Assembly (NCBI GenBank): GCA_905178155.1
Contig: CAJINV010000002.1
Location: 7,923,650 to 7,987,649, forward strand
Origin: Amoebophrya sp. A120
Lineage: Eukaryota; Protista; Dinoflagellata
Reading direction: 5' to 3'
DNA: 64,000 nt
This document shows, one piece after another, positions 25,125-58,126 of this stretch (the first letter of the stretch is position 1; every line of letters begins with the position of its first letter). A model generated the notes under the pieces. The model searched no databases, had not been told where the DNA came from, and saw only the letters and a program-made list of their open reading frames with translations. The position numbers were made by a program, and so were the translations under genes.

Positions 25125-28100
25125 TTAAGAGATCCGCCAGATTTCCTTTGGTTTTCGGTCTGCGTCGGTTTCTGCGACGATTCTCTCGCCGTGCGCATCG
25201 ATCCCCATGCGGTCCCGCGATTTCAGGGTTCGGATTTTCCGGGCCTGCGCCAGTGCGTCCTGGGTGGTGTTGGTCATCTCCTTGGGCGCCGGCGTCCGGT
25301 TCGCGACCGACATCACCCTCCCGGCCAGTTTCGAGTTCAAAAAGTGCGGCTTGTCGTGCTGCCAGGAGGAGAGACGCAGGGTCTTCGTCCCCACCAGGCT
25401 CCACCAGTCCGTCTTGAAGTCCTGCCCCAGTAGGTCGTCAATGTGGTCCAGGATGGACAGCTTGCACGTGGGCTTCATCAGGTCCTTCTTGTCCCGGACG
25501 TACTTGCCCATCCGCTTCTTGTCTCGGTCGAAGCTCCACTCGCGGACGATGGCCGCGAAGTCCCCGCAGTTCTGCTGGAAGCACGCGCCCATCCAGTAGT
25601 TCACGTCGTACTCGTCCATGTGGCGCGGGTCGATCTCCAGCTCGTCGCGCAGCCGGTCCATCTGCCGCAGCCGCTCCCGGCTGATCTGCTGTTCGAGCCC
25701 CATCGCGGCGAAGGCGTCACGCAGGTTATCCAAGAAAAAAACTGTGTTAGTGAAACTTTCTTTGGTTGACAGCATCACAAATTTGCTCTACATGACAGAG
25801 AAAACCTGTCATGCGCGGCTTGTAAGGGAAAACACACACGAAAAGAGGACTTCATGGCTGTCTGGCATGACAGGCGCATACTCTGTTGCATGTTCTGCAA
25901 CACAAATTTACACTTACACAGTTTTTTTCTTGCATACAGGTCCGCCACCGTGTACACCTCCTCCGAGGGCTTCGTGGACAGCTGCACCGACGCGTCCTAT
26001 CCTGTGTAAAAACATCCCCATCCCAGAGCTGTGATGCAGATCTGCAAGCGCAAGAGCGTTTGTAATGCGCATCCCCATGAGAGGCGTTTCCCATTGTGTT
26101 TTGGAACTTGTAATGCTGTAAACAGGATGAGGAGATGGATTTGGTATGCGGATTCCCTCGCTAAAATGCACTACACTACAGCCTGCAACTTGTCTTGCGT
26201 GGTTCCCAAAACTTCAAGGTTTATGTTGCAAAATCCCCATCTTGACTATGGGGTGGGGATGTTTTTACATGGGATACGTCCGCGCTGTTCTTCAGCGACT
26301 TCAGCGCGTACAGCCACTCGTCCTTGAAGTACCCGGGCAGGAAGTCTTCGTACCCGTGCTCCACGATCTTCAGAAACGTCTGCGCCCGCAGCGTGTCGTC
26401 GAAGCGCTTCAGCAGGTAGCAGAACTCCTCGAAACTGGTGACCCCGTCCTGGTTGATGTCCGACTCGCGGAGCAGGTCGATGAAGCCGGACTGCTCGTCG
26501 CCCGGGTCCACCGGAATGCCGCCCCGCTGCATGATGTTGAACACCCGGCTGTTCGGAACCTCGAGCGGCTCGCCGGAAATGTTGGTGGGAAAGATCTCCA
26601 TCAGCTGCGACACCACGTTCTTTTGCCACCCCCCCTGCTTCTGGAACCGCAGCCAGAGGATGCGGCAGATTTCGCACACGACGCAGGCCGTGTCGAAGTT
26701 CACCTCCAGCGGCGTCTGCGCCTGCTGAATCGGGCTCGTCTGCGAAAACGCAATCTCCAGCGCCTTCAGATACATCGCCGGCGTCAGCTGATTGTCCTCA
26801 ATGTACAAATCGCGGTTCGGGAAGCGGAACTCCAAGAACGCCCCGCACACCGCCTGCAGCTCCGTGATGCTGATCCACCCGAACTGGCCGGGCTGGAACG
26901 CGTCTTCCTCCTGCTCCTCCTTCTTGTCCTTCTTTTTCGCCGCTGCTGCACTGGAGGCCGACCCTGCTGCCGCCCCCTGCTGCCCACCGGCTTGCTGGTT
27001 ATTTTGTGCGCCACCATTTCCGCCGGTGTTAGTACTTGACGACGCTCCTTCGATTTCCACCACCTGCTCACCCCCGAACCGGACGTGGCCCGCCTGCCCC
27101 TGGCCGTCCTCCTGCGCCTGATGTTCGACACCCCCAGTCGGAGACCCGTCCGCCGCCGCGCCGCCACTGCTGTTCCCCCCGGCGCTCCCGGCGTTTTCTG
27201 TCGCGGCCGCTGCGCCGGCACTTTGTTCCGAAGTTGATGTGTTCATCGCACTCTTCACCAAGCCCAGCCCCAGCTCCGGGTACTCGCGGCTGAGGTGCAG
27301 CATGACAAATTGATCCGCCAACCAGTTGAGATCGTTCAGCGGGTGCAGTTGCTCCAACTTGCTCCATCGGTTCTCGTATTCCTGCACGGACTTCAGCTGC
27401 CGCGAGCTCATGGACACGTATTTCCACCGGGAGAGAAAGGGGCGAAGATCCCCCACGAGCGAATTCAGCAACACCGGCTCGATTCGCGTGAAGTCCGTCA
27501 ACAGCTCCAGGTCCGTGACCCCGACCGCGGCCGGGTGCTTCTTATGCAAGCGTCAGGTTTGAAATCGACAAAGTTGAAATGATTTGCCATGCATAAAATG
27601 GATGCCAGTTGGGGCCTCAGTTTTCAAGTGGCGCATGACAAATTTCGGCAGCACCAAAATCCAGTCTGTCATGCTGTTTGGGCAAAGAACGCTGCTCCTG
27701 TCATGCTACTCTGGCAGCACATCGTCTTTCCCTAAACAGGCTCGCAATCGGTCTCCTTTGCCTCCTCCCCAACACAGGCCACACGTGCCCTACATTTTAC
27801 GCATCACAAATTATTTCAACTTTGACGATTTCAATCCTGACACATCCATACTTCTTCCCGTCCCCGTAAAGCCCGTATCCGGTCAGCGACCCGAGCTCCA
27901 GCGCCAGCAGCTCGGCCATCGTGGCGATGATCTGCTTCTTCACGTCCATGGCCTGGCTGCGCATCTTCATCTTGGAGTCCTCCTGCTCGCTGTCGGAGTC
28001 GCTGCCGGCTGTCTTGCCCCCGCCGGAATTGAAGTCCACGTTGGAAACCGAAAACGCGATCCCGCCGGACTTCTCCATGGGGTTGGCCTTGCCGCTCGCG

Positions 28101-36038: not shown

Positions 36039-39000
36039 TCATGTCGCAAAAGTTACATTACCAGCAATTTTGTCCTCTGCTGTGACTAAACCTGCAGGTC
36101 CATGTAGATGTACTTGCCCGCCGGTTGTGCCAGTTGTACTGCCATCTACCGTCCCGGGATCGAAAACTACTACAGCGTCGCCACAGTAGAGAAAGAGCAA
36201 GGAGAGTAATCTTTCTATGGGCCGGAAGAAATTTGAACAGAGGAAGGAAATGAAGACCAGAGCAAATATTTTTGTACACGAAAACACGTACTTGTTCCCG
36301 CATACACTACCACAACAAGTACATAACAAGCCTAAAATTGGTATGACCAGCTCCAAAACCACCTTGTTCCAGAAAAACACAACCGCTTTCGTAGCACAGC
36401 CGAATATCCCCCGCCCGAGTGTTTGTAGGAAAGACCGTAAACAGCTCCCTAGAGTGGCTCCAGTGGATTTTTTTTCCTGCTTGTTTGCCTGTTCTGTACG
36501 AAATGTAACCGTTTTCGACCCTTGCCGGGACTTGCTCGAGAAGGGACTTGACGCAGAAGACCTTGTTGTGCTGGTGGTGCCGTAGTAGTTGTAGTACGAC
36601 CCAAAAGCGTTGTAGAAGCCTTGTTCGACATTTCCCGTGAGACCTGTACTAGTAGAGGTGGACCCATTTCTACTAGCAGTACCTCCGAGGTGGAAAAAGT
36701 CCTCCTGCCGCGCTCTCCCCCACTCCCTTTCTGAAAGCCCCAGCTTCTCGTGGTGTTCCTGTGCCAGTGGATGCGTGAAACCAGAGACGTAGGTGCGGTT
36801 CAAGTTTGTTTCCTTCGCATAGAGGACCCCAGAAGCACGGCTTGACGTGGGGGTCATCTCAGTCACAGTACTAGTCGCGTGCTGAAACCGGTGACTAAAC
36901 GCCGCGAGCCGCCGCTCTTTGCTCGTCTTCTCGATACTTCCGGGGCTAATGGTCGCATCTAGAGACGGGGAGCTGCTCGGTGAACTGCTCTCCGCAGCGC
37001 TGGGCCTAGATGTGGTTGTACTCCCCACTGGCGGCATTCCTGCTTCTGGTTTTGTTTTACTACTCTTTCTTATTGGGCTATCTTTACTCGTTTTTCTCCG
37101 ACTCGACGGAGAAGCTCCGCTCCTTTCGGGCACGATCTCCGCAGTACTAGCTCTAGCGTCCGCATGACCCTTAACCTTATTTGTGCTGCTGTGATTGTTT
37201 GATAAGATCTTCCCGGCTGGCGGTGATGTACTATGAAAATCATGATCAGGTCGTGTTCCACTACCCAGCATCCCTCTCCGTGAGTTGCCCTCGGGGTCCG
37301 GGTCCGTGATTCTCCGCTCGGCCTGGTGGTAGAAGCGTGCGGTCGGAAACTCCGGCTCCCCCGGCCCCATGGTGCAGACCGGGAACTGGTTCGAACCTCC
37401 GTACTCGAAAGGCAGAATTTCCTTGGGAATCTTAGTGAACAGCGCTTGTTGCAGAAACGGAAAATTCTCCTCGTCCCCGACAATGGTGTCCCGCGAATGG
37501 AAGGGGATCTGCAGAAAAAAGATCTTTTTGCAGGTATTCGAGGGCGCGAACGCGCGAAAGATGCTCCACGCGATCTGGAACAATGGTGGCGCGTTGATGA
37601 TGAAGGTGCCGCGCTGGGTGCCCGGGTAGTGGTTCAGCAGGAGTTTCACCAGCGTCTTCTGCAGCGCGGAGTGCTTGGACAGGCGGAAGGTCCACCCCGA
37701 GAAGTCCATCAGCACGTAAATCTGGAACGTGGGCAACTTCTGTATCCTATGTAAAAACGTACCCACACCAGAGTTGTCATGCTAAACAAAATGCGACACA
37801 CTTTGCCCCCCCATTGTGCCATAGCCGCAGATGGCCTGAGACGCAGGGCGGGTGGGTCAGGCGGACACCTAAGTGCCATCGCCATCATCTCCCGGCCACT
37901 ATATTCCAACTCTGTTATCGCCACCAACCATACTTCACAACCATCCATACTGTGCCAACTTGCCATCTGAACAACGCCTCACTTTTTATTTGCCAACAAT
38001 TCCTTACTCTGATTCTCGCAAACTTCCAACTCGCAACCACTATAACGGGGATGTACAGCCAGGCCCACAACTACAAGAGAAAGCTGCAGCCTGCGGCAAA
38101 CCAGTTGTTACTGTCTGGACGAATGCATTCACTGGAGGCACTAAGCGACAAGCGCCAGCCTGAAGTGATGTTTAAACATCCAAACTAAAGGTAAGAGGTG
38201 CGAGATTTAATGCTGATCTACCAGACCGCCGGATTTGGCGATCATGATCGGCGACTGCTTTACACATGACCGAACGTGCGGGGTACAGATACACGATTGG
38301 CAAGGCTGCTCAAGTAGAGCACGTTTCTGCACGCGGACCGCTGCCCACGCGGGAGCAACACAGAAGCGCAAAACATCGGCGCCAGGTTCATTCTCGATTC
38401 CACGGCGGGAATATTCCCGCGTCGTGGGCAACACCATCTCCCCCAGCGCTGAAAAGCCTTGAGCTCGCATCTATTGCGCGCCCCTACATCGCATCTATTG
38501 CGCTGGGGAACACGACTCGATTGAGCTTGTTGCTACTGGCTTGGGCGAGCTGGGGGGCATCCACGCTCGCGAAGCCTCGACCTGGTGTCCGTCTGCCGAA
38601 GCCTACCCGAGCTGCTTAATCCACCGGCGGCATGGTGGACTTAACCCTTTCCAGAACTCCTGCCCAGGTCTGATTTCGTATTCCGGATCTGCTGCGAACA
38701 TGGAGAAGTTGCTGCCCATGCCCGTCAGACTAAGCGAGGACCTTGCTGCTGCGCAGGATGGTGCGTGGACGACTGCTGCAGGATTCAGGCGCCGTGCCCG
38801 GGCGGGGAGGAGGTCATTTTTAGGAGGGGTACTCCGCAGCGCGGGGCGCTGGTTCTGAGATCTCGGCTAGTGTAAAAAAAGGGGGCCTGAGATCTAGTAG
38901 GCTACTGTAAAGGGGGGCACAGCGGACCCGCCACGCTCGGGTGTTTATCTACTTCTTTCGAAACTCCTCTTCAGGGAGTCGGGGGAGATACCGACGTGGT

Positions 39001-40688
39001 GTCAGTGGTGGTAAAGTGATTGTGAGTTATTGCATCTACTCTACGGCATAGCTCCCCCCTACTCTACGGCATAGCACACCAGAGTTGTCATGCAGATTTG
39101 CATGCCAAAAAGGTTTCCCATGCGGAGCCGCATGAGAAGCGTTTTCTAATCGTGTTTGAGAATTTGCGATGCTCTAATCAGCATGATATGCTAGATCTGT
39201 GATGCTGCTTGAGGTAGCTAAACAGGATTACACTACGGGGCCAAATTTGTCATGCGAAACAACCAAAGCTGGATAATTTGTCTAGCAGATTTCCCATCTT
39301 GACTCTGGTGTGGGGATGTTTTTACACAGGATATTCTGCCGCTGGAGGCAGACCCGCTTCAGCGCCTCCATCATGTAGATAGTGTTGTTGCAGTACATCG
39401 TGTATCAAATGCAAAAATGTCTGGGTCTGGAATGTTGCCGGGTTTGTCATGCATACTTTGCATGACCCAGGATGTCTGTAATGCACGACCTAGCATCACA
39501 GATTTCTAGATGGCTTCCTGATGCCTACTCCGCATGACAAATGCCCTCCCCGCGTAGCACAAACTAGACTCCTCTTGCTGGTCATGCAATACAGATTTTT
39601 TTAGAGTCCAAAGTTCGCATCACAAGTTCCGACCTTCCAGACCCAGACATTTTTACAGTTGATATCGTGAACTCCGGGTCGTTGGGGTCCACCAGCTCCG
39701 GCCGGGAGAGTCGACTGTCCGACCAAACTACCGGATAGCCGTCGTGAGCGAAGCCGAGGAACCGCGTGCTGCCGTTGTTCATCAGCAGCCGTTCCGGGGG
39801 CTGCAACGCGGTGGGAAGAAAGTTGTTCTTCGCGTTCCTTTTCCGCGCCTCGCGCCACCGGACGGTGGCGCGGAAGCTCCGCACGGCCGCAGGCACGTCG
39901 TTCTCCGTGGACGCGAGAAACCGGAGAACTTCCTCCCGGGTGTATCAAAAGGAAAAATCCTCCCTCCCCATATCGAAAACGAAACTTGTGATGCTGGATT
40001 TCCGTATACAAATCTGATTTGTATTGCGGTAGAGGACTGCACGCAGATCGTAAGCCTAAAGAGGGGCCTCTTGGTGTAGGGGCCTAGCATGGCAAACGTC
40101 TGCCCTATAGGCCTTGCAGCATTACCAATCGCCTGCATATCGTGGGGGAGTCTCTGAGTTTGCCCTCTTGCAAGAGAGACAGGATTTGTGGTCACAAATC
40201 AGCATCACAACTTTTTAGAAACATACCTTTTCAGTATGGGGAGGGGGGATTTTTCCTTACGATAGGGTGTAGATGGTTTGCTGCTCGTCCGCGAACAGCA
40301 GCTGCTCCCAGTCCTCAAGGGGCACGCCTGGCGGGGGTTCTTGCTGCTCCTTGCCTGCTTCTATGTTATTGTTGGGTGCTGCCGTTTTTGAAGCCACTTG
40401 ATCTTGATGACGCGCTATCGGAGCTGCATCATCTTCTTCGGCGTTGATGCGTCGGAGCTCAAGCAAAAACGCCTGGTAAACTGAATCTTCCCTGGCATCG
40501 GGCCGCTGCGCCTCCAGCTGGTGATTCACCCGAGCAGGTGCTGCTGCTTTCTTTTCTCGTCTTTCTTTTCCCCCTGCTCCAGGTGGTCTAGACCGGGGGT
40601 GGTGCCAGGCCTTTTGGCTTTGTTCCAACTCGTCCTGGACATCGAGAGGTCGTCGGGCAGTTCTACCATCCATGATCTGGGTCGACAC
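36039..40688 (-). CDS. CRAL-TRIO (Sec14-like) lipid-binding protein with C-terminal hydrophobic segments; start uncertain
   Basis: EVLRFLASTENDVPAAVRSFRATVRWR (CRAL-TRIO_N), LMDFSGW, NHYPG..IINAPPLF..AWSIF, ILPFEYGG. Joined across three introners. Confidence 0.88.
37743..39333. mobile_element. Introner family C carrying a 1.29-kb insert, TSD TTCTG
   Basis: C TIRs at both ends. 1591 - 1292 - 19 = 280 bp, the family C size. Join LQRQ|KLPTF. Confidence 0.95.
37783..39074 (-). mobile_element. Non-autonomous internal-deletion derivative of retrotransposon 2
   Basis: 37783-38008 matches 47004-47236, and 38009-39060 matches 55987-57034. 19-bp TSD CACACCAGAGTTGTCATGC at 37764-37782 and 39075-39093. 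Confidence 0.93.
39403..39664. mobile_element. Introner family B (262 bp), TSD TCGTG
   Basis: B TIRs. Join PEFT|MYCN. Confidence 0.95.
39943..40264. mobile_element. Introner family A (322 bp), TSD GGGTG
   Basis: A TIRs. Join TIYT|REEVLRFL. Confidence 0.95.
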
Positions 40689-43523: not shown

Positions 43524-46500
43524 TTATATGCGGCAAACGTAACTGCAGCTCTGCGTCACGTACCGCACCCAGCGGTAGGGGTTGTAATTCTGGTGCTGCT
43601 CCGCGATGCGCAGGTACCGCACGCCGATCTTTGACAGAGAAAACATCGGAATCTCGAAATTCACCGAGATGGGCCCGAGGTTCAGCTTCGCCGACGGAAG
43701 TTGCGATTCTCGGACAAGTATCAAGGTGCCCCTGCAAAGGAGCGGGATGCGCTGTCACGGTCGCGTGAATCTCGTACTTCTACCCACTTGAAGCCAAAGC
43801 CAATCGATAGCGACATCTCATGCAGATACGGGACGCAAGTCCATGTTGGCTTTGGCATTGCGATTCTTTTTAAAGAAAATTTACGTCGAAATAATGACAT
43901 AACCCACGACTGTGACAGTTGCAGTTCCCGCCCCGGGAAAATAGATGTTCTACTTCGGTCCCCTCGCATAGAGTTCAGTCGAGTTTTCAGGGTGAATTCG
44001 CTGTTGCCCGGGAACTTCTTCAGCTGCCACACAAGCTTGTTTTCGTTCGGTAGAAACTCGACCTGTTTCTTCTGCTCGGTGTTCTGTGCCGCGTTCGCGG
44101 ACCCGGACCCGCCGCTGCTGGACTGAAACACCTCGGTGGCGGAGATGCTCGCGTATTAAGAGGAAAAATCCCCCCTCCCCATATCAAATGGGAAATCTGT
44201 GGTGCAGGATTTGCGTACACAAATGCGCGCTGTCTTGCGGTACGGCATCGCAGCCAGATCCGCAGCCTAGGGAGGGACGTTTGGGTCTAGTTGCTTAGCA
44301 TTACAAAGGGCTGTCCTCTAGGCCCCACAGCATGTCAAATCGCTTCCATAAAGGCGCGGAAGCCTCTGCGTTGGTCTTCTTGCAAGACGGACGTGATTTG
44401 TGGTCTCAAATCAGCAAGACAAATTTTGCGAAGCATGCCTTTTCGATGTGGGAAGGGGGGATTTTTCCTTTTGATATCGCGACGAGGTTCTTCGGGAACT
44501 GACACTGAAACACGACGTTGCCCCCGTAGTTGGTGTCGGGCAGCTCGGCTCGCGCCGTGATCGTCAGCTCGCAGGAGGTCACCTTGTCCGCCTGCTGCTG
44601 GGGCGGGAAGGAGACCCGGGGAAAAATCCGGAAGGGCACCTTCAGCTCGTTCGTGATCCGGTAATTCATCACCGCAAACTCCCCGTCGGGTGGGAAAAAC
44701 GACAGAATTCCTGTTGTAGAAAAGTAGAGTTCTTGTGTACCACTAGTACCTGCTTGGTTATATTAGCATTCTGCACAATCGAACTCAAATCGAAAATTTG
44801 AAACAAGTATTTTGCTGAAGAAATGTTCCTCATGACAACGTTGTAGCGAGAGCAATACTTTGGTCGTCAAAGTCCCGGAGGTCCACGCACTCGTGAAAGT
44901 TGCAGTCGTCGAGCTGTACACTTGCAAACCGATTATTTGCTGTATCACGATGGCGAAATGCATTCTGCTTCTGATTCCCAGAGTTCAAGAGGATAAGAAT
45001 CAGCGCGTTCCACGCCGGAAGGTAACTCGAGATGGACTAACTGCGGAAGAGCTGCTTCATAACAGACTCATCTCGCGCCTACTTTATGGTTTTCTTTCTC
45101 ATCAGGATCACGCCGCCAAGGGAAAGGGGCACAGTTTTCAGCATGGCTCCTGGTGCATGCCGATGTGTTCCTCCCGTGAGCTGCATGCACCTCCAATAAA
45201 CGAACTTTGGTCTTTGCTCTCTTAGAATCAAAAGAAGCTTGCAGATTTCCTGTTGATAGCCGGAGGCTGCGCCGATGACCAGGTCCTCGTTGAGCGCGAG
45301 CTTCAGTTCGGGATTTCCGGAGAGGTAGCTCTTCATTTGAATTGACCCGTCCACGCACGCGTTCAGAATTTGCCTATCAGTTTTATTGCGGTTTTTTGCG
45401 TGCTTTCGAGTCCTTTGTTTCTCGCTGAGTCGCACTTTTTCTTATACTTATTTCGCGTCATGCGAATGATCAATTACAGTTTTCAGCAGCTAAAACACGA
45501 GAGAAAATGTGTCACGTCGGAGGGCACAGGTTCCGCGATTCCATTCTGCTAGCGGGTGGCTTAGAATAGAAGAACAAAGTAAGAATTATGTATGAAAAGA
45601 TACACTTTGATACCCGCTAGAGTTGCAATATCACACGAAAAAGCTGTATTGCAACTGCCGGGTGCCTTGTTTGCGCCACATTCTTGCACTACTCCTTTCT
45701 TTCCAACGCCCACTGGCCCAATGCAAAAACCTTCGAGGCAGTTGTAATGCAGTTTGGTTCTATTTGGATATCATAAGCACGGTGACGCGCTCGAGGATGT
45801 CTACGAAAATTTCGTTTTTTGCGACGATCTTGTCTTGTGTAGGCCCGACCGGCCGGTGAACCGCGTTGCTCGGCACAGTTCGCGCAGTCAGGTTGGGTAA
45901 CGCCGCTACGCCTTTCAGCGCACCACCTGACAAAAGGAGAAATTTGTAATTGCTTTTATTTCCGTGCATATACCTGCAGAATTTGTGTCTGTTCCTTCTA
46001 GGCTACTGCTGAACTTCCGGAAAGTGCCTTTTTCAAAGTCAGTCTGTAGAACAAAGAGTGGAACTAAAACTCTGAAGAAGAATAAGCACCTCCCAGCGCA
46101 TTGCTGACTGCGGTCCCGGCGCTCCACTATCGAATGCAAAAACTCGGTCAGACCCAGAAGAGTCATACGTAAAACAGCGGAAACAAACAGTGCTTCTAGT
46201 ACATGAAAAAATGGACTTTATTTGCTGGCAATCTTTACAAACAATTCACCTTGGCGCGGAGGATCAAAACACTAAAGAGCTTGTTCGCATGCCGATCTCA
46301 CTTTTGAAAAAGCGCACAATGCCTAGCGGGTTGTCTCGAGATGAAGCTGGACGACCTGTGCATGAAGAACTATCTCAGGTGTAGTTGTTTCCCTGTTATG
46401 TCTGTAATCATGTAAGTATGGTATGCGTATAACTCGTCCGTGGACAAGAACATTCTTCCTGGTGCGTATCTGCAGGCCACTGGCGACTGTGTTTTCGTTC

Positions 46501-49500
46501 AGCACCGCGGCGGCTTCGTTGTGGACACAGAGCCGCAGCTGCTCCGTGGAAGTAGTCTGCGGGTACCCGAAGTCCAGCATTTCGTCGAGGAGTTCGTAGA
46601 GGAGCACAAAGTTCTTCCGTATGGACTCTTCGGTCAGCGTGCCGCAGTAGTCTTTGAACACCTTGCAGATATGCATTGCAAATATGTCTGGGTCTGGAAG
46701 ATTGCACCTTGTCATGCTACATCTGGATCGTGGAAAAATTTGTGTTGCGTGATTACCAAAAAAGGCCCACTTTTGAACAAGTTTACAGGCAGTTTCTCAT
46801 GCAGGAAAGGCATGATAGAGATCTCACAGAACCTGTCATGCTAGGCCGTGCATGCCAGACCGGGTGGGTCATGAAAAAACTGCATGACAAACCTAGCAAT
46901 CTTCATCCAGACCCAGACATTTTTGCATTTGATAGCAGATCTTCGTGAGCAACTCCAGCAACATATCCTGAGGAAAAACGTACCCACCCCAGAGTTGTCA
47001 TGCTAAACAAAATGCGACACACTTTGCCCCCCCATTGTACCATGGCCGCAGATGGCTTGGCACGCAGGGCGGGTGGGTCAGGCGGACACCGAAGTGCCAT
47101 CACCATCATCTCCCGGCCACTATATCCCAACTCTGATCTCGCCAACCAACCATACTGCGCCAACAACCATACTGTGCCAACTTGCCAACTGAACAACGCC
47201 TCGCTTTTTTTTTTTTTTTGCCAACAATTCCTTACTGTTCAATTCAATTCATGGAGCGGCCCCGTGCTGGAACACTTCTGGTGGTGGACGTGAGCACGAG
47301 ATTTGCGGCTTCGCGCCGCGACAACCAAATGGGGGTCCCTTCCCCCCCCCTCCGTTTTCAAAAATCCCGTTTGTGCGTGCATGATGCAAAGGGCCAACAT
47401 CGGTGGTCGACATGGATGAACTCGAGATCAAGCTCGAAACGAAAGCACCGGCCACAAAAAGAATAAGCGAAAATCTTCGGCGAGGATCGGAAGACCGCAA
47501 TTTGTGATGCCAATGGCTGCTAAAACCCGAACGGCGGGGGGGTATCTACCGCGCCGAGCGCGCGGATTCGTTTTCCTTTACGTGTCGAGCCGGTAGCAGC
47601 GGCACACGCCACATCTCTTCCATCTTGCAGCGTCCGGACGGATGTGTTGGGGGCATAGCAGTGCGGGGGGATACTAACTTACTGCGGCTTAGCAGGGCCG
47701 GATTTGTCATGCAAAATTTGTTTTCGGATAGTGCTGAACGAACTTTTTTCCTCTTTCTAGAGCTAACAAGTCACCGCGTCACGCCTAGGTGACACCCGCA
47801 AGCTATTTAGTAGCTGCGCCGCCTGAATGGTTTTTTAAGTACTGACCCGGTAGCAGCGGGCGAAAGATCTTTTTTAGGAAACTACACCGGCAGCTTCGTG
47901 CAGCTACCGCAGATAGCGAGCAGGGCGCCGCTAGTAAAACCAATAAACTCTAAATAATTTGTCATGCAAAATTGGAATTTGAATCTTGTAGTACAGCAGC
48001 TTCGGGACCATCCGGGAGAGAAAACTCCGCTTTGCCGCAGCTGCAGGTGCCTTCGTCGCGGTCGAGGATGTCTTGCATGGCATCGGCTCACGCTGAAGTC
48101 GAAGTTGCAGATCGGCGCGCGGGGAGGACGGGCTTGAGACTGGATTTCTACGTTTCGCCCAGCTGGCTCGAAGGGACCCGGCAGAAAAGCAAGATGGGCT
48201 TCACGAGGCCGAAGTACAGCTATGTAGTGCGGTCCGACCGGTGATCTGGATGAAAATGCGCTACACCGCACCGGCCGATCCGGATAAAAAAAAAAGTGGC
48301 GCAACAGCATCGCACTTTCACGCTATCTGGATGAAGATGTGCTGCCAAACCGCAGCCCGGTAGAAGGACAACATGGCGAGCTCCGAAACGCGGCCCGGCT
48401 CCGGTCCAGGCAAGTAAGATTCCGGCTGTTCCCAGGGCGGCGGCGTGGGCCCGATACGCCGCGGGGTCTGGTAGCGACGGAAACCGGCGCCAGGTGGGGA
48501 TTCCTGTTCTGCGAAGGCGTAAACAGGGTCAGCAGCTGGTTTGGCGGTGTTGGTGCCCTGTACACCGGTTTTCTGGCCACTAGGCGCGATTCGGGCGGAA
48601 CAGACCGAAGCTGTTCTTTTTTCCTTTATCTCCGTATTCACCTGCTACCACGGTGAGTTTGTCGCAAGTGAAGCAGCTGCTGCTTCGTGGTCACCTCCAC
48701 GTCGTCAGGATCAGGTCGTGGCGGAGTATTATGGATGGAAAAACCGAACGGAGAAATGCAATATTAAAACTGTACGCTATCGAGATGCTGGGGACACCGC
48801 CGGCAAGTCAGCTCGGCGGCATTGCTTTTATGGTGCTATGATGTGACTTCCATGTTCTGAATGCTTCGAAACTGAGACCCGTGCCCAGAACTGAAACCCT
48901 GAACCGAAACCCGAACCGCAAACCCGGGCCCGACACCCGGCCGCAACCGAGACGGGTGTATACCGTCGGAAGTGCAGCTGTGTTTTTGCACCGACCGGAG
49001 GAGAGCGACTAGGACTAACCCTGACGAAGGCGTACAGCCGGGGGAAGAAAGTGAGTCGAGGAGGGGTGGGGAAGCGAGGAGGGGCGACAAGAGTCCAGGC
49101 AGCCCAGGACGGAAGATCAGCAACAGAGACGATTGCTCCCCCGGAGCGCCAGCTGATGACCCGGGAATAGAGGCAGGTTGGTGAAGACCAACAAGAAAAA
49201 GAGATATAACCCGGGCGGAGTAGGGCGACCTTATGAGAGGCCTGTAGCAAAATATATTTTGTTGCGCGATTGCCGAAAGTCCACTTGATCCCTAGTAGAA
49301 AATGCCCGCGGGCGGGGCAAACTCACAACTGTGGCGGTCTCATACCGTCCTAAGTGCTATCATGTTTTGAACTTATCAAAAAAACCCAGCCGTGCTGAAA
49401 CCCCGAGAAGCCGAAAGCTTATGGCACGCACGTTACCCGGAACGGAAATCCCCCGGAACCGAAGCCCCCGGAAGGGCGGGAAGAGGACACAGTGGTTCTG

Positions 49501-52500
49501 GCAGGCAGCTAAGAACGGGGGAAACTAACGCTCCACCGCAGCGCAAGCGGAAGACCTGGGAATACAATAACCAACAGGTCAGTGAAGACTAACAAATACT
49601 AGTAGAAAGTCCCGCCAATAGATTCAATACGATACTCGTGACGGGGTATATGAGTACATCAAATACAACATGGAATCTGCATGACAAATTGATTTTTATC
49701 CGTTTGGTTTGTGTGTAATCCCCGCCTTTTTCGGCACTGGACATTCTGCGCCGAATATCCGCTTCCACTACAGATGTGGGCTAGAGCCGGTGGCGCGGTG
49801 CCCTTTCGCGGGTTGGTCGAAGAAGTTGCAAAAGGGGCGAAGACAGGTCGACGAGCCGTGTGCTTCCTGAGCAGGTTCAGCTTGCCCGGGCCGCCATAGT
49901 ATGTTCACCGCCTGGCGGGGGATTCCTGGCATCGCTGCTGGTGTGCGGTTCTAGGTGTTTTTATACAGTGGGAAAGCTGACGGACGCACGTTAGTAGCAG
50001 TTTGTCATGCTTAAAGTATTGCAAATGCAGGAACACGCAGTGGAAGTGCTGAGAGCGAAGTATTTCTCGACGGGCATTTGTTGCCGAAATAAGATTTATT
50101 TTAGACGCTATGGGTAAGCGATGGCATCGCAGAGATCATGCACACAGTGTGGGCTTAGTCATTAGCACTGGCGAAATTTAAAATGTCTATTTTACGCGCG
50201 CCGAACTAGATTAGAACTACACACGAGCGACGAACTTTATTACAGGACCAAGGAGAAAACTTCTTGCTTGTTTTTTCTTTTACTTTTTGTTTGGTGCGCA
50301 TGACAAACTGCTACCGTGGTAGTGTCCGTTCTTAACTTCAAGGAGAGTATGCTGCTACTCCGTCACCGGTAGCTGGGTGCTGTGCCTCGGATGGTCGCAT
50401 CCGCGTTGTCGCCAGTCCGGCTGTCTACTTGGTCACGTCCGTCGTGCTGCGGTGGCATAGTAGCAGGTAGTCGGGGGTGTGAGATTAGAGATACACGCAG
50501 AACGACACACGAAACGCAACGACACTTCGAGGGATATATATTTTCCTCTCGATATCTCCTCCCGCTGCACCGGTCACACCACACAGTCCTCGTTGGGTGC
50601 CACTCTAGCGCTAATTTCTACTCTTTCTATCTCAACTACTACTCCCTGCTCGACTTTACTTCTGTTACAACAATGCTGATTTTGAGATTCTGCATGGTTG
50701 CTGCCTTTTAACCAAGAGAGCGTAGCTGGTCCTCTACATTTTCTTCTTTTTTGCTGTATCTACCAACTTTGTGTACATGAAAGAGAACCAAGTAACCGTC
50801 TAGCTCCAACAGTATCACATACATCTTGCGCAACTTTAATTTCCTCTTAGCATAATAATGACGCTGGCAGTTCATATACTTCTCAGCACGGCATTCGGAC
50901 CTTTAGCTTGTAACTTAGTTCGTACTTGTTGGCTTTTCGTTTGCATATTCGGATATTCTATTTGCATAATTTTTTGGTATTATCATATACTAGAAGGCTG
51001 AGCAGGTGAGTAGTGGTTTACAGATAGACTTTTTCATTCCTCGCCATGTGGATCCTGGGTCTCCGCGAACGCTGGCATGTCCTCCGGGTCCTGAGTGGCA
51101 GGAGGCGGTCGAGATGAGGACGCAGCAGTCGCGCCGGTCTTCCTCGCCTTCCGTACCTGGGGGGACTTTGCAGCTGCTGTTCTCTTCCCCGATGCTGCTG
51201 CCGCAGCAGTGGTCTTTACCGGATATTTCTTCGCCGGTACTGTTGTTGCAGCAGTGGTCTTTGCCGCAGTTTTTCTCCCCGGTGCTGCTGTCGCCACAAC
51301 AGTCTTGCTCGCCGTAGGATTTTCCTTTTCAGAATTGCTGCTTGCAGGCGGCAGGCCCGGTTCCTGCGTGTGGGGGGGGATTGGAGGTTGCGGCACCAGC
51401 GTCCCTGTTGGTTCGGTCTGCGGGCCCGCCCCAGTCCCTGTCGGTGGCTTTGGTGGTACCAATTTTGCCATGTTGGTGCGGATAATTTTCGCCAGCTTGT
51501 ACTTGTGCATTTTTTGCGTCAGCTCCTGCAGGCAAATAGGCAGCTTGAAGCTCCGCCGGGGCCAGTCCGCATACTGGTCGCGGCCGGACAACTCCAGGAC
51601 CGAGGTCGTCGCCACGTGGGTGTTGTGCGCCCCGATGCCCTTGGTTTTGTTGATGTCCAAGTCAAACCGCTTCGCGGAATGCAGCCAGATCCTGTCTTTC
51701 CACTCCATCGTCGCAAGCCAAAACTCACGGAAGACACCCGAGCCCCGGACTTTGTCGTTGATTCCTAGGCCTTCGACGATCACGTGGGGCCGGAAACCCG
51801 AGATACTCGCCGCGGTGGACATGCGCCGCAGCGCCTCGGTAGCGGTCTGCAAGTACCTGAACCGCGCCGCGGTTTGTGGGCAGGGTATTCCCACATGGTC
51901 CGTGGACTTGATCGCCATCCTGGATGTTGAGTCGGTGTTCAACACGATCGCGCTGTTGGTCGATCGGCATGCCGTGATGACATACGCGCCTGGGATGTAT
52001 CGCGGGCCCACGCCACCGGGAGCAACATGGGGGAAGGGGCACACCTGCTGCAGTTCTGTTGTCAGCGTGTCGCACACCCCGGCGGGGCTGGTAGTGATAA
52101 ACCCCGCTCCTGCTGCGTTGTGCTGGATCGTTAGTTCGAGACTTTTATCGGCCAGATTGGTGGCGTTGATCCAAGTACGGGCCGACTCGTCAACAAATCC
52201 AGCGGGCCCGTTCGTGGGCACCCTTCTCGTAATTTCTGGCAGAAACTCGCTTTGCCCGGTAAGTGCAGTCCATTTCCCGGCCGCCTGCCGCAGTGCCTTG
52301 GTGGCCTGTAGCCAGGGGTCCACCGCGTTCACGAGATCGGTAGAAAAAGCCAGCTTGTACAGGGCCTCCGCGTCAAGCTTATTCAGCGCCAGCAGGTCCA
52401 CGATGTGCTGGTTGCTGAATCCGAGAAAATTCATGATGGAAGTTGCGACTTGGTGCAAGTACTTCTTCCATTTTTCCGTCGACCAAAGCTTCACAGCAAG

Positions 52501-55500
52501 GGGCAGCAGGTGAGCGACGGAGGAGGTGTAGGCCCAAATCACGAGCAACCGGAGCATCGTCCCCGAGAGCGAGACCATGCCGGAGTACACCTGCTCGACC
52601 ATGGATCGCGCGGCCCCAAGTCTGCCTGCCAACTGCTTCCACAAAACATCCTCCGGCAGTTGGTTGATTGCGAAGAGACAGCCGAGGAAGAGCGTGGAGC
52701 TCTTGATTTGGGGCACGATCCCCCACGGGTTCAACGCTTTCACGATCGTGGAGCGGAGCTGTTGCAATTTCGCCGCATTGGCCTCGGCGTTGGGGCTGTT
52801 TTGCTGGAACGGGTTGCCCGGCATAGCTTCGTACTTGTCTTTGCCCGCCAGGTACACGCCCATTTTGGAAAATTTCCGCTCCTCGAATTTTGTCAGGGTT
52901 TCCATAATCAGCTGGATGTTGCCGTTGTCGACGTCGTCTTTGTGTGCCCGGAACCCCTGCGCGCGGTCGTCCACGCAACTTCCCAGAACGGCAGGCGGTT
53001 TGTTCTCGTACGGGTGCACCCGGCCCCCGGATGCTGGCGGGACTGCTTCTGCTGTGAAAATGTTGGTCTGCTTCACTCGGCGGGGGGGCTGTTGGTGGAT
53101 ATGGTGGCACGGATGGACATCCTTTTCTAGGGTGTAGGGCTCCCAAGAGTAGGGCGAAGTAGTATCCTTGTCCATTTCTGCCAGCAATGCTGCAGCTGCT
53201 GTCTCGATTCTACTTCGACATAACCTCCGCGTTGCCGGATCGTAACAACTCACCAAGAACCAGTGCAGCAGCTTCATGTACCTCATGGACAAAATGCATC
53301 CCGCAATCATGACTTCGGTGCTGCCCTGGATGCATTCCCAGAATGATGGAATTAAGGCGTATTTTCGTCCGTTCCGGATGATTATCCGTTTGTTGAGGGT
53401 GGCCGCAAACCAAAGCAGGATGCCGGGGTGGCATTTTGTCTGCCGGAGGCACTGCAACATCGCGACGCCGGTGATGGTATTGTAGTAGTTGCAGTAGTCC
53501 GTGGATAGGTAGATCCAGAACTCATCGGGGCCTAAGCTAAGTAAGCAGTCCAATAGTTTGAGAACCAAGATGCACAGAGCCACTGTGGGTCTTCCTCCGT
53601 GTCCGTAAATTCCCATGACGTTCGTATCCTCCGCAGCCTGCATTATCCGGCGGCCGAAAACTCCGCTGATGGTCTTCAAAGCGTACCCAGTCCGTGTCAC
53701 GCAGCGGACCTTGCGGATTTCTTCTACCTTTCCCCCTTTTCCCAGTAGCTCGATCTGCTGCGTTCTCATTGGCTCCGGTATGGAGGTTGAGAGAAACCGT
53801 GGGTCGGATGAAGTCACTTTCTGCACCAGGTTGTTGCTCGCGGTCGTAAAGTTTTTCTTTAGTTCCCGCGGGGCGGACTGCAACAACTTCGTCCTGGCGC
53901 CCGACACTCCCTGCGCTTGAGAATTTGCGTTCGCCATCAAGTCTTCAACCTCCGGGGTGGAAATCTGAAGCGGCTTGCACTTTCGGGCGGCGCTTGCAAG
54001 TTCTTCTTTCAGTCGGATCCAGTTCTCCTGGGGCATCTGCGTGGGGAGTCCGCAGTCCTTTCGCATTATTGATGATTTCAAGATATGCGATTTCCCAACT
54101 TCGACCGCGACTGCTTGTGCTCCTGAGATCACACGGGCGCCGGATTTTACGGAATCGATCTGCGGAAGCGGTGCGCCTTTTTTCACCCCGGTCACCTTCG
54201 TCCGAACAGCCGCTTGCATCTCGAATAAGCCATCCATAAACACACTACGCCCCGGCGTAGCTTCAGCTGGGAGGATGGCGCCGCCGGCATCTCGCACCCA
54301 GCTAATGAACCTCTGGATCTTGCCCGAGACATCGGCGCGGGATAGGTACGCGGCGTTGCCATTGTTGGCCGGACCCTGCTCCGCTGGCGGCTTTTCTTCC
54401 GGCGGTGGTCTCGGCTGGTTTTGGGTGCCGCCCTGTTTCGGAGGTTTGCGCGATACTTGCTGCGCCGTTTTTGCAAGATTCGCTGCGGTGGCTGCCTCTG
54501 CAGACCAAGTCTCAAAAGCGAATGGGCAGTCCGTGGGTGGTGGTGTTGTCTGCGCGTAGTCTACCTGGGCAGCAGCCAAGGCGGCCGAGGTACAAGCCGG
54601 GTCGTCGCGTCGCATCAAACATCGCGTCTTGATGCCCGAGGGAAGTGCGTCTGCGAGACTCCGCACGGCAGAAATGGGGGCTGTAAGTGCCGCGCCATAT
54701 GTGTACGGCATCTGGTGCTTTTCGTATGACGCATAAATATTTTCCTGCGTGATAGTGCTGTTTATCACGGCTGCCGGGTCTCCGGTCGGGTCGGGGTTGT
54801 GCGCAGTCGGCAAGCTATTTTCTTGCGTGCTGGGCTCCTCATCGTAAAAACCGGAGAAGACCAGCGCAACATGGTCGCAATTGTACATGCGGACGTACTC
54901 CGCGGTCTCCGAGCCATCCAAAATCTCGCTTTGCCCCTCAGTGGCGTCGGCCGGGTTGCGGTAAATCAACGCGCGCGCAACATGCACCTGGTTGAAGCCT
55001 CGCGTCGCAATGTGGTCGATCGTACTGCCCTCCGTCTTGTGAAAGCACGTCTTGCCCCCAACGTCCTGAAACTCGTAGTGCAGCTTGACCCAGTTCAACA
55101 GCGGCACCAGGACATGGTCCCGAACGTCGGCCGAGTGGTTTTCCCACGACTCAAAGTCCGAGTTCCAGTCTCCACACACGTACCCGCGGGCCGTGGAATT
55201 TGTCATGCCCGTGAGCTTGGTGAGCATATTCTGCATCTGCCTATCGAGCGAAACCTTCTCCGATGCGGAAAGGGGCTTCGATCGTGGGGGTGCGTACAGC
55301 ATAATCTTCAGCGTGCCGGCGATGATCGTTCCGGTCAGAAACAGAAGAAAGTCCTCCGGGTCGTCGGAAAACCACGATACCAGCTGGTCGCCTTGCTCCT
55401 CCGGGTTCACCTTGGATAGTACCCAACTACCGGAATTGTGGTCACCAAGCTCCGGAAGAAGATCGGGGTGGGCGAAATGTTCAAAGTGGGCAACGTGGCC

Positions 55501-58126
55501 ACTTTTGCAGTTTGTCATGCTGCTGTTGGTAGTTTCGTTTACCACCGCCCGTAGCTGGTCATCGCGAAACTGCGCCCGGTCTCCTTGTGGGACCCCGGCT
55601 GGGATTTTCGTTTCGCAAAAGAGCTCCGCGGTGGCCTTCTCCGCTTCCTGCAGCTGCTGGGCGAGTTTCGACCGGTTGTAGTCAAAAGAATTCCAGATAA
55701 TGGCTTTCTCGCACCGCCCATATTCTTGTGCCTCTGCATCCTCGTCGGGGATTTCGTAATACCGGACTTCCTCCTCCTGCAGGTGCGGGTCGTGGAAGTC
55801 GTCGTCTTCAGCTAGTGGGTCCTCGAGAACCAACTCCTCGTCAGCGTCGACAAGAGTCATGCGCGCTAATTTTGAAATGGGCGCCCCGTTCCCCGTGCAT
55901 CAACTTTTCTTTTTTACGACATCCTGCAGCACTTATCACGTCGCGGCGTGAGCAAGCGGAGATAAACAACAAAAAAAACAAAATTACTGATTCTCGCAAA
56001 CTTCCAACTCGCAACCACTATAACGGGGATGTACAGCCAGCCCCACAACTACAAGAGAAAGCTGCAGCCTGCGGCAAACCAGTTGTTACTGTCTGGACGA
56101 ATGCATTCACTGGAGGCACTAAGCGACAAGCGCCAGCCTAAAGTGATGTTTAAACATCCAAATTAAAGGTAAGAGGTGCGAGATTTAATGCTGATCCACC
56201 TGACCGCCGGATTTGGCGATCATGATCGGCGATTGCTTTACACATGACCGAAAGTGCGGGGTACAGATACACGATTGGCGAGGCTGCTCAAGTAGAGCAC
56301 GTTTCTGCACGCGGACCGCTGCCCATGCGGGCGCAACACAGAAGCGCAAAACGTCGGCGCCAGGTTCATTCTCGATTCCACGGCGGGAATATTCCCGCGT
56401 CGTGGGCAACACCATCTCCCCCAGCGCTGCCAAGCCTTGAGCTCGCATCTATTGTGCGCCCCTACATCGCATCTATTGTGCTGGGGAACAAGGCTCGATT
56501 GAGCTTGTTGCTACTGGCTTGGGCGAGCTGGGGGGCATCCACGCTCGCGAAGCCTCGACCTGGTGTCCGTTTGCCGAAGCCTACCCGAGCTGCTTAATCC
56601 ACCGGCGGCATGGTGGACTTTACCCTTTCCAGAACTCCTGCCCCGGTCTGATTTCGTATTCCGGTTCTGCCGCGAACATGGAGAAGTTGCTGCCCATGCC
56701 CGTCAGGCTAAGCGAGGACCTTGCTCCTGCGCAGGATGGTGCGTGGACGACTGCTGCAGGATTCAGGCGCCGTGTCCGGGCGGGGAGGAGGTCATTTTTA
56801 GGAGGGGTACTCGGCAGCACGGGGCGCTGGTTCTGAGATCTCGGCTAGTGTAAAGGGGGGCCGGAGATCTAGTAGGCTACTGTAAAGGGGGGCACAGCGG
56901 ACCCGCCACGCTCGGGTGTTTATCTACTTCTTTCGAAACTCCTCTTCAGGGAGTCGGGGGAGATACCGACGTGGTGTCAGTGGTGGTAAATGATTGTGAG
57001 TTATCGTATCTACTCTACGGCATAGCTCCCCCTATTCTAGATTTGTTGGATCTCAGGCAACAAGGCAAAGCCTTGAGCCAAAAAAACCCCAGAGTTGTCA
57101 TGCAAATCTGCATGCCAAAAAAGTTTCTCATGCGGAGCCCCATGAGAAGCATTTTCTAGTCGTGTTTTTGAGTTTGTGATGCTAGAATCAGCATGATGTG
57201 CTAGATCTGTGATGCTGCTGAACTAGCGAAACAGGATTATTCTAGGAGGGCAAACCTGTCATGCGAAACAGCGAAAGCTGGTTGATTTGTCTAGCAGATT
57301 TCCCATCTTGACTCTGGTGTGGGGACGTTTTTACTCAGGATACAACAATGTGGCGTTACTATTGGTGTTAAATGACGTGGTTGCGACGAAGTAAAGTTAT
57401 CATATGGAAAACAAGCACCGCCGGAAGAATGCGTTCGTTCCTCGAAGAACTACATACATGAAGTGTTCTATAATTGCTCAATCTCCGACAGCAAAAGCAG
57501 AGAGGCGCTGTATTTACGACCTTTTTCTACAAACATCACGAAAAACCAATAGGGACATTTGTGGTACGTCAGCCGTGCTAGCGCCGGTACGATAGCTACA
57601 CCGGCATTCATCAATTTTCAGTTCAATGTACTTATTTCATGCAAGTAGATAAAACACTGTGCCACGCTTTGTCTTCCCTTCTCAGACTTGCATTTTTTTG
57701 TTTTTCAATGTGATATCAATCCGTTTTTCTTCAGAAAATAGTAGTTATCGCACAGAAAAAAGCAGGCATGCATATTCGTAATGCAAAAAAAAATAGCAGA
57801 AAAATTACATTTAGTGGTTTAAGTCTAGAAGTCTGTGTCTATTTTTGCATTACAAATATGCCCTGCCTGCTTTTTTCTGTGGGATAGTAGTTGATCCCGT
57901 GCTGGTGAAAGACCGGGGGACAGTCCTCCCCGTGCTGGAACAAAGTCACCTTGCGGAAAAACATCTCAGCTGTGCCCTTGACCACGTCCCCGCGGAAATC
58001 CCGGGTCAAAATGGTGTCTCCCCGCGGCGACAGAACGTAAAACTGGCTCATACATTGGAAGACGAGCGGCTTGGTGGCCCGCAGGTGCGGTGGCGGAGCC
58101 GAGGAGCTGCTCGAGGTGGTCGCCAT
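43524..58126 (-). CDS. AP4M1: AP-4 adaptor complex mu subunit, multi-exon
   Basis: [122 protein letters not shown]. Confidence 0.92.
44154..44476. mobile_element. Introner family A (323 bp), TSD TCGCG
   Basis: A TIRs. Join NLVA|SISATE. Confidence 0.95.
46670..46934. mobile_element. Introner family B (265 bp), TSD GCAGA
   Basis: B TIRs. Join TKIC|KVFKDY. Confidence 0.95.
47004..57085 (-). mobile_element. Non-LTR retrotransposon 2, apparently full length (10.08 kb)
   Basis: 18-bp TSD ACCCCAGAGTTGTCATGC at 46986-47003 and 57086-57103. About 1.2-kb 5' UTR, one 1608-aa ORF, about 4-kb 3' non-coding region, no poly(A). Confidence 0.92.
51034..55860 (-). CDS. APE endonuclease-reverse transcriptase polyprotein (1608 aa, uninterrupted)
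   Basis: EEP motifs IIWNS, FCETK, CGDWNS, STIDHI, CDHVAL. RT motifs [21 protein letters not shown] (52966-52977), LFLG. Ala/Lys/Thr-rich tail. Confidence 0.9.
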   Translation of the reverse strand: MTLVDADEELVLEDPLAEDDDFHDPHLQEEEVRYYEIPDEDAEAQEYGRCEKAIIWNSFDYNRSKLAQQLQEAEKATAELFCETKIPAGVPQGDRAQFRDDQLRAVVNETTNSSMTNCKSGHVAHFEHFAHPDLLPELGDHNSGSWVLSKVNPEEQGDQLVSWFSDDPEDFLLFLTGTIIAGTLKIMLYAPPRSKPLSASEKVSLDRQMQNMLTKLTGMTNSTARGYVCGDWNSDFESWENHSADVRDHVLVPLLNWVKLHYEFQDVGGKTCFHKTEGSTIDHIATRGFNQVHVARALIYRNPADATEGQSEILDGSETAEYVRMYNCDHVALVFSGFYDEEPSTQENSLPTAHNPDPTGDPAAVINSTITQENIYASYEKHQMPYTYGAALTAPISAVRSLADALPSGIKTRCLMRRDDPACTSAALAAAQVDYAQTTPPPTDCPFAFETWSAEAATAANLAKTAQQVSRKPPKQGGTQNQPRPPPEEKPPAEQGPANNGNAAYLSRADVSGKIQRFISWVRDAGGAILPAEATPGRSVFMDGLFEMQAAVRTKVTGVKKGAPLPQIDSVKSGARVISGAQAVAVEVGKSHILKSSIMRKDCGLPTQMPQENWIRLKEELASAARKCKPLQISTPEVEDLMANANSQAQGVSGARTKLLQSAPRELKKNFTTASNNLVQKVTSSDPRFLSTSIPEPMRTQQIELLGKGGKVEEIRKVRCVTRTGYALKTISGVFGRRIMQAAEDTNVMGIYGHGGRPTVALCILVLKLLDCLLSLGPDEFWIYLSTDYCNYYNTITGVAMLQCLRQTKCHPGILLWFAATLNKRIIIRNGRKYALIPSFWECIQGSTEVMIAGCILSMRYMKLLHWFLVSCYDPATRRLCRSRIETAAAALLAEMDKDTTSPYSWEPYTLEKDVHPCHHIHQQPPRRVKQTNIFTAEAVPPASGGRVHPYENKPPAVLGSCVDDRAQGFRAHKDDVDNGNIQLIMETLTKFEERKFSKMGVYLAGKDKYEAMPGNPFQQNSPNAEANAAKLQQLRSTIVKALNPWGIVPQIKSSTLFLGCLFAINQLPEDVLWKQLAGRLGAARSMVEQVYSGMVSLSGTMLRLLVIWAYTSSVAHLLPLAVKLWSTEKWKKYLHQVATSIMNFLGFSNQHIVDLLALNKLDAEALYKLAFSTDLVNAVDPWLQATKALRQAAGKWTALTGQSEFLPEITRRVPTNGPAGFVDESARTWINATNLADKSLELTIQHNAAGAGFITTSPAGVCDTLTTELQQVCPFPHVAPGGVGPRYIPGAYVITACRSTNSAIVLNTDSTSRMAIKSTDHVGIPCPQTAARFRYLQTATEALRRMSTAASISGFRPHVIVEGLGINDKVRGSGVFREFWLATMEWKDRIWLHSAKRFDLDINKTKGIGAHNTHVATTSVLELSGRDQYADWPRRSFKLPICLQELTQKMHKYKLAKIIRTNMAKLVPPKPPTGTGAGPQTEPTGTLVPQPPIPPHTQEPGLPPASSNSEKENPTASKTVVATAAPGRKTAAKTTAATTVPAKKYPVKTTAAAAASGKRTAAAKSPQVRKARKTGATAASSSRPPPATQDPEDMPAFAETQDPHGEE

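Follow-up and report, generated by a model that had tools for sequence, protein, structure and literature searches.

An endonuclease-encoding, LINE-like retrotransposon that very probably targets a single site inside introner elements of Amoebophrya sp. A120

The window analysed here is a 64,000-nt stretch of the genome of Amoebophrya sp. A120 (contig CAJINV010000002.1, positions 7,923,650-7,987,649), and all coordinates are window-based. Its minus strand carries at 47004-57085 a 10,082-bp retrotransposon without long terminal repeats (non-LTR), which encodes an apurinic/apyrimidinic endonuclease (APE) and a reverse transcriptase (RT) and is hereafter called the master. The master begins exactly 40 bp inside the end of an introner, a mobile element whose own insertion creates an intron. 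The host introner belongs to family C, with a length of about 280 bp, 31-bp terminal inverted repeats (TIRs; 28 of 31 positions match) and 5-bp host duplications; the arm left of the master is 46964-47003. The master very probably represents a sequence-specific, APE-encoding family resembling the long interspersed nuclear elements (LINEs), which targets one site just inside the left TIR of this introner of about 280 bp and about 3,300 copies. The features of the composite, including the target-site duplication (TSD), the untranslated regions (UTRs) and the open reading frame (ORF), are listed below.

46959-46963 (left) and 57343-57347 (right): 5-bp host-gene duplication CAACA made by the introner
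46964-46994, plus strand: left 31-bp TIR of the host family-C introner, 28/31 against the reverse complement of 57312-57342
46986-47003: left copy of the 18-bp TSD
46995-47003, plus strand: target motif TTGTCATGC, with the predicted first-strand nick after 47003; exact in 45/60 copies
47004-47236, minus strand: 3'-terminal 233-nt tail, with a terminus lacking poly(A), common to the derivative described below
47237-51033, minus strand: long 3' UTR, of which the module 47237-48148 has 71-88% identity with related elements elsewhere
51034-55860, minus strand: single intact ORF of 1,608 aa
52678-53505, minus strand: RT core (motif A, D at aa 788; B, IQG at 844-846; C, CVDD at 962-965; E, LG at 1059-1060)
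54862-55701, minus strand: APE-type endonuclease domain (N at aa 57, E at aa 83, GDWN at 230-233, IDH at 281-283, DH at 329-330)
55861-57085, minus strand: 5' UTR of 1,225 nt, shared with non-autonomous copies elsewhere at 97-100% identity over about 1.1 kb
57086-57103: right copy of the 18-bp TSD, which regenerates an intact target site
57104-57342, plus strand: remaining part of the introner, ending in the right TIR (57312-57342)

A second insertion in the window is a 1,292-bp internally deleted derivative at 37783-39074. It has the same orientation as the master and starts exactly 40 bp inside an introner end, at the same nucleotide. Its 3' tail is 89% identical to that of the master and its 5' part 97-100%. 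The host introner of the derivative has a 31-bp TIR, likewise matching at 28 of 31 positions, and a 5-bp host duplication of its own (TTCTG). Both TSDs end AGAGTTGTCATGC; the two host introners differ by a C/A substitution, and each insertion has its own variant in both TSD copies. Two further family-C introners in the window are empty. The features are as follows.

37743-37782, plus strand: left arm of the introner that hosts the derivative in the CRAL-TRIO gene, including the 19-bp TSD copy 37764-37782
37783-39074, minus strand: non-autonomous derivative of 1,292 bp, in which part of the 5' UTR (matching about 55987-57040) is joined to the 233-nt 3' tail
39075-39333, plus strand: other TSD copy (39075-39093), then what remains of this introner
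37738-39333, minus strand: composite intron of 1,596 nt (introner, derivative and one host duplication), with the joint 37737/39334 and a 5-nt ambiguity
26003-26277, plus strand: empty family-C introner with a variant site
21465-21746, minus strand: reverse-oriented family-C introner, likewise empty and with a variant site

The arrangement is as the original prediction had described it: the two elements, their shared position 40 bp inside the introner, their orientation, the TSDs of 18 bp (46986-47003/57086-57103) and 19 bp (37764-37782/39075-39093), and the variant sites of the two empty copies (26025-26037 and 21707-21719) were all found again at those coordinates.

Genome-wide searches covered the whole 115.5-Mb assembly, and 60 insertion loci were read. 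The 233-nt 3' tail gave 41 matches, each starting at the terminal nucleotide and reaching a variable distance inward; a 25-mer of the element terminus occurs 52 times, and its reversed control not at all. A family-C-like arm lies directly upstream of the junction, at the same nucleotide, in 51 of the 60 loci, far more often than chance would give, and the outer flanks are unrelated. The motif TTGTCATGC stands exactly at the junction in 45 of the 60 and within one mismatch in nearly all, the sequence after the nick starts A(A/G)AT in nearly all loci, and the orientation of the element relative to the introner is constant. Most copies are thus found at one target nucleotide with independent flanks, and the proposal of a site-specific APE-type retrotransposon with an introner as its target, for which a search with the 3' tail and a table of flanks had been suggested, is supported. 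An alternative is that insertion is random and that only copies landing in introners survive, through splicing, in a gene-dense genome. The compact genome and the splicing of its introners (PMC7789003) are in keeping with that process, but selection can yield neither nucleotide-identical junctions in 51/60 loci nor a constant orientation. The junction table rules it out, and it is given almost no credence.

Clean TSDs were found at 36 loci and range from 11 to 21 bp, with 22 of them at 17-18 bp. The inserts are 22, 23, 23, 26, 42, 49, 78 ... 1,571 bp long, plus the one 10,082-bp copy, making at least 30 different lengths. Variants of the host sequence (ATAG, ACTCC, GCTG, GTAATGC) are present in both TSD copies. 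The insertions are spread over at least four host-introner subfamilies, and the main insert subfamily alone over at least three. Variable truncation, variable TSD lengths and host single-nucleotide polymorphisms (SNPs) on both sides argue for many independent target-primed insertions, as had been anticipated from the differences between the two window copies. The rival explanation supposes a single retrotransposition event, after which one ancestral composite of introner and retroelement spread by introner DNA transposition or gene conversion. Since the TIRs are intact, composites could in principle move; loci L002 and L016 share a TSD of 12 bp and a 5' junction (with the same extra 8 nt), and L083-L085 of the second family have identical flanks. 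Set against this are the insert lengths, the range of the TSDs and the host SNPs carried in both TSD copies; L002 and L016 lie in different host subfamilies (AAATCTGCATGC.. versus AGATTTGCAATGACA..), and the outer flanks all differ. The spread of a composite is very improbable, and as the main process it is ruled out by the junction, TSD and truncation data.

The window copy is the only protein-coding copy, the next best match in the assembly being 38% identical. The non-autonomous copies of 1.1-1.6 kb keep both ends of the master and have no ORF. Their 5' UTR is 97-100% identical to that of the master, and in one copy it is 100% identical over 1,100 bp, which points to recent mobilisation in trans, presumably by the protein of the master. 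The insertion regenerates the target at its 5' side, and the regenerated target is reused, with second elements at the site or 4 nt after it in L017, L007 and L025. Subfamilies of the 3' tail differ in their location: TAAAGGAATT.. is found mostly at the host variant TTGTAATGC, and TAAACAGAAG.. in a different introner family.

In every copy the sense strand of the element terminates in ...TTTGTTTA, which abuts the target, and a poly(A) or simple-repeat 3' tail is absent; a run of A lies about 200 nt inside the element. Defined 3' tails without poly(A) also occur in known site-specific LINEs. The ORFs of the 3' UTR of about 4 kb (47237-51033) contain no Pfam domain. One module of this UTR, about 900 bp long (47237-48148), recurs at 71-88% identity in some 30 further loci, from which the 233-nt tail is absent. 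This tail, which is correlated with the target, looks like an exchangeable module.

The 30-nt sequence of arm plus target occurs 3,296 times with at most three mismatches (control, 0), whereas the bare 9-mer TTGTCATGC occurs 68,435 times, against 716 for its reversed control, an excess of about 95-fold or about one copy per 1.7 kb. The motif is also kept by unrelated introner families. The site in the C arm makes up at most 4.8% of the motif copies, yet takes 85% of the insertions, so recognition must extend beyond the 9-mer; the target is at least 13 nt long and probably longer. About 1.5% of the near-perfect arm sites, of which there are about 3,300, are occupied and roughly 98% are empty; among the first 100 perfect sites listed, five are occupied. 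Variant sites (ATAG.., ..GCTGTCATGC, ..TTGTAATGC) are used as well. The suggestion of the original prediction that occupancy follows the perfect motif is therefore not sustained, and with so many good sites empty nothing can be read from the fact that the window's two variant copies are unoccupied.

The endonuclease domain of the 1,608-aa ORF was identified by Pfam PF14529 (E 5e-7, 30 bits versus a cut-off of 27.4). Its catalytic motifs GDxN, IDH and DH are invariant in an alignment with four paralogues; a profile of the domain gave only weak matches to exonuclease III and nocturnin among the PDB sequences (E about 0.3). The RT is more divergent. Pfam RVT_1 was not detected in the whole ORF, in its halves or in six relatives, and neither phmmer nor a profile found an RT among the PDB sequences. 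Motifs A-E are conserved in an alignment of ten paralogues from the same genome, motif B being separated from motif C by an insertion of about 110 residues. A structure predicted by AlphaFold from the paralogue alignment has human LINE-1 ORF2p as its best Foldseek match (E 2e-7), and VIA-align ranks R2 (Z 17.5) before LINE-1 (Z 15.4) and group II intron RTs (Z 13). The language-model neighbours are RVT_1 clusters (27 of 30 Atlas matches with RVT_1). By its motifs and fold the ORF encodes an RT of the non-LTR type. The endonuclease domain, the RT, 5' truncation, variable TSDs and the absence of an LTR or TIR of its own are the properties of an APE-type non-LTR element. The two ORFs (ORF1 and ORF2) of the R1 and Tx1 clades are not seen, as no ORF1 was found and the 1,225-nt 5' region of the master has no sense-strand ORF of at least 100 aa. 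The retroelement is also not an introner in the strict sense, since it lies between TSDs of its own within a TIR introner that was there before it, and this introner is also present in about 3,300 copies without an insert.

The RT lineage is highly isolated: among 1.84 billion protein representatives, a profile search found 32 relatives, none of them a recognised LINE; the distant relative P0007 passes PF03372. The lineage as a whole (window ORF, P0002-P0032) escapes Pfam RVT_1. P0001 (eukprot g13847.t1), a homologue from another eukaryote, is 28-31% identical and is annotated as a single protein that begins with a V-SNARE domain. This annotation hints that the element may lie in sense orientation inside a gene there too.

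Further retroelements are located at introners. The 38%-identical paralogue at L041:925-8310 (G000:C1:8216000-8225999; ORF 4234-7869, minus strand) has a poly(A) tail and a TSD of 13 bp (GGATGGGGATTTT). It is inserted in the other arm of a family-C introner, about 47 bp from the end, at a sequence unrelated to the TTGTCATGC site, and an empty copy of its host introner is found 700 bp away (8784-9065). Relatives of its 3' tail occupy the same site in the other arm. Subfamilies of this poly(A)-tailed element (L072-L091) are inserted 2-4 nt after TTGTCATGC in several introner families, and some of these copies adjoin copies of the main element (L025/L072, L007). Several retroelement lineages are thus associated with introners. 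Within the window, a second RT ORF, 22% identical, lies at about 11003-12805 on the plus strand inside an introner of another family (9047-16607; TIR ...AAAAATGTCTGGGTCTGGAA).

The element may not be sequence-specific at all if TTGTCATGC is a site that the introners' own transposition or excision machinery naturally nicks or cleaves, and at which retroelement RNAs prime opportunistically. The strong over-representation of the motif fits such a nick, as do the at least two further lineages, poly(A)-tailed ones among them, whose insertions lie either at the motif itself or 2-4 nt downstream. This account does not explain the concentration of insertions on the arm site among all copies of the motif, or junctions that are exact to the nucleotide. 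The regular TSDs of 17-18 bp fit the staggered double nick of an element-encoded APE, of which such nicks are typical. The catalytic motifs of the endonuclease are intact and conserved among the paralogues, and the insertion of the L041 paralogue on an unrelated sequence of the other arm is better explained by diverging endonuclease specificities. A pre-existing nick is accordingly regarded as unlikely.

If the element is sequence-specific, the steps of its insertion would probably run in the following order. The endonuclease would nick the strand ...AGAGTTGTCATGC^A(A/G)AT, with the nick predicted after ...TGTCATGC on the strand shown. The 3'-OH would then serve as the primer, so that reverse transcription starts precisely on the final nucleotide of the RNA of the element; this RNA lacks poly(A). 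A cut in the second strand 17-18 nt upstream would give rise to the TSD. Reverse transcription would mostly abort early, leaving heavily 5'-truncated copies. The one intact master, in the window, would supply the protein, and the two-ended deletion derivatives of 1.1-1.6 kb would be mobilised in trans. As both TIRs of the introner are intact after insertion, the enlarged introner would still be removed as a non-canonical intron and the reading frame of the host gene would be spared.

Both window copies are in sense orientation to their host genes. A guess of the host-gene strand from ORF length at the 60 loci, too crude for use and made with no control of empty introners, gave 14 sense, 4 antisense and 42 ambiguous copies. 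The exon left of the derivative matches CRAL_TRIO (E 1e-13), in agreement with the earlier assignment, and the gene lies on the minus strand. A transcript-like contig of 3,047 nt (run X1) skips 37738-39333 exactly, and its exons have no mismatch to the assembly; two ordinary introners, 267 and 327 nt long, are missing from it as well. The word share of run X1 is 0.52, equal to the exon fraction of the stretch, and X1 is therefore read as spliced RNA. The removal of the 1.3-kb derivative from the host mRNA together with its introner, as had been proposed, is supported by this contig. The other host gene had been named AP-4 mu, and at the level of the adaptor-complex mu family this stands, as the minus-strand exons at 43.7-45.4 kb give three colinear matches to the mu family; the first exon alone has no Pfam match. 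The two exons bordering the 10.4-kb composite, each translated on its own, keep the frame, and both form part of a single mu-subunit gene.

A micro-exon of about 29 nt (46930-46958) comes next after the composite intron of the master and directly adjoins another introner (46668-46935). The introner ends read TATCCT (46964-46970, 57336-57343, 37743-37749, 39327-39334). If the neighbouring base of the host duplication is included, the introns start GTATCCT and ATATCCT on the coding strand, which resembles the consensus of U12-type 5' splice sites; the 3' ends do not fit AC/AG.

Several points weigh against the reading of a sequence-specific element that is spliced out with its host. Nine of the 60 copies lie outside C-like arms, eight of them after (T)TGTCA(T/C)GC. 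Other retroelement lineages are found at the same motif or a few nt from it, which a pre-existing nick could explain. The role of the element's own APE as the nicking protein and the splicing of the 10.4-kb composite are both deduced from sequence. Transcript support comes from one Logan contig of a run whose RNA status is guessed, and the raw RNA-seq runs X8-X10 contain almost no reads of this organism. The AlphaFold model of the RT is of middling confidence (predicted local distance difference test, 60).

A tentative extension, held to be doubtful, is that the introner serves also as an expression and homing device and that the LINE retrohomes from intron to intron, much like group II introns. 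The master, which has no evident promoter or ORF1 and is in sense orientation in its host gene, would be transcribed as a segment of the pre-mRNA and set free when the intron is excised. At the 3' side of the RNA, the 40-nt introner arm would pair with the nicked arm of another introner copy, placing the primer exactly on the last base of the element. If true, this would explain why poly(A) is missing, why the junctions are exact and why the specificity exceeds the 9-mer; it would describe a whole clade of very divergent RT elements, of at least two to three lineages, specialised on introners, and the published 'TIR-flanked retroelement' chimeras of this genome would be explained by it.

The known targets of site-specific LINEs are ribosomal DNA, telomeres, genes for small nuclear RNA, tRNA and the spliced leader, microsatellites, and one family of DNA transposons. 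Full-text literature searches found no description of an introner-targeting retrotransposon. For a sequence-specific LINE the introner would be a new class of target and a new kind of safe haven: it is multicopy, lies inside genes and is removed from the mRNA, which allows a retrotransposon to occupy hundreds of coding genes with little harm. With an exact, long target and a single intact master, the endonuclease is directly testable.

The host element matches the published description of Amoebophrya introners, which have inverted repeats at the intron ends, direct repeats of 3-5 nt and non-canonical boundaries (Farhat et al. 2021, PMC7789003; Gozashti et al. 2025, PMC12130899). Elements of A120 that combine TIRs with retroelement ORFs have been noted as puzzling (PMC7789003, PMC12130899) and discussed as possible clues to deep relationships among transposons (PMC12130899). 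Retroelements homing into a defined introner site are not described in PMC7789003 or PMC12130899, and some of the puzzling elements may instead be nested insertions. The nearest precedent is Tx1L, which inserts into the DNA transposon Tx1D (PMC1919474). Tx1L and Tx2L of Xenopus laevis, with the targets Tx1D and Tx2D, are likewise site-specific APE-type LINEs in a multicopy transposable element. In the present case, however, the target is an introner in protein-coding genes and the insert becomes part of a spliced intron; the element has no ORF1, and its RT is too divergent for Pfam RVT_1.

R1, R2, TRAS1 and SART1 share with the element the exact 3' junction in a multicopy target, the 5' truncation and the logic of a safe haven. 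Their targets are RNA genes or telomeric repeats, whereas here the target is a non-coding mobile element in hundreds of genes. The RT fold is closest to that of R2, but the R2 endonuclease is restriction-like and not of the APE type. The pairing of an autonomous LINE with an internally deleted partner that keeps both ends is also known from ingi/RIME of trypanosomes; the present elements differ in lineage and target, and in that the tail of the derivative is less similar to the master than its 5' part (89% versus 97-100%). Group II introns, in retrohoming, resemble the system as intron-resident RT inserts that copy themselves into homologous sites by target-primed reverse transcription. Here, a search of 46500-57800 with Rfam at E values up to 1 found no ribozyme and no other RNA family, the intron is derived from a DNA transposon, and the RT element is a passenger with TSDs of its own.

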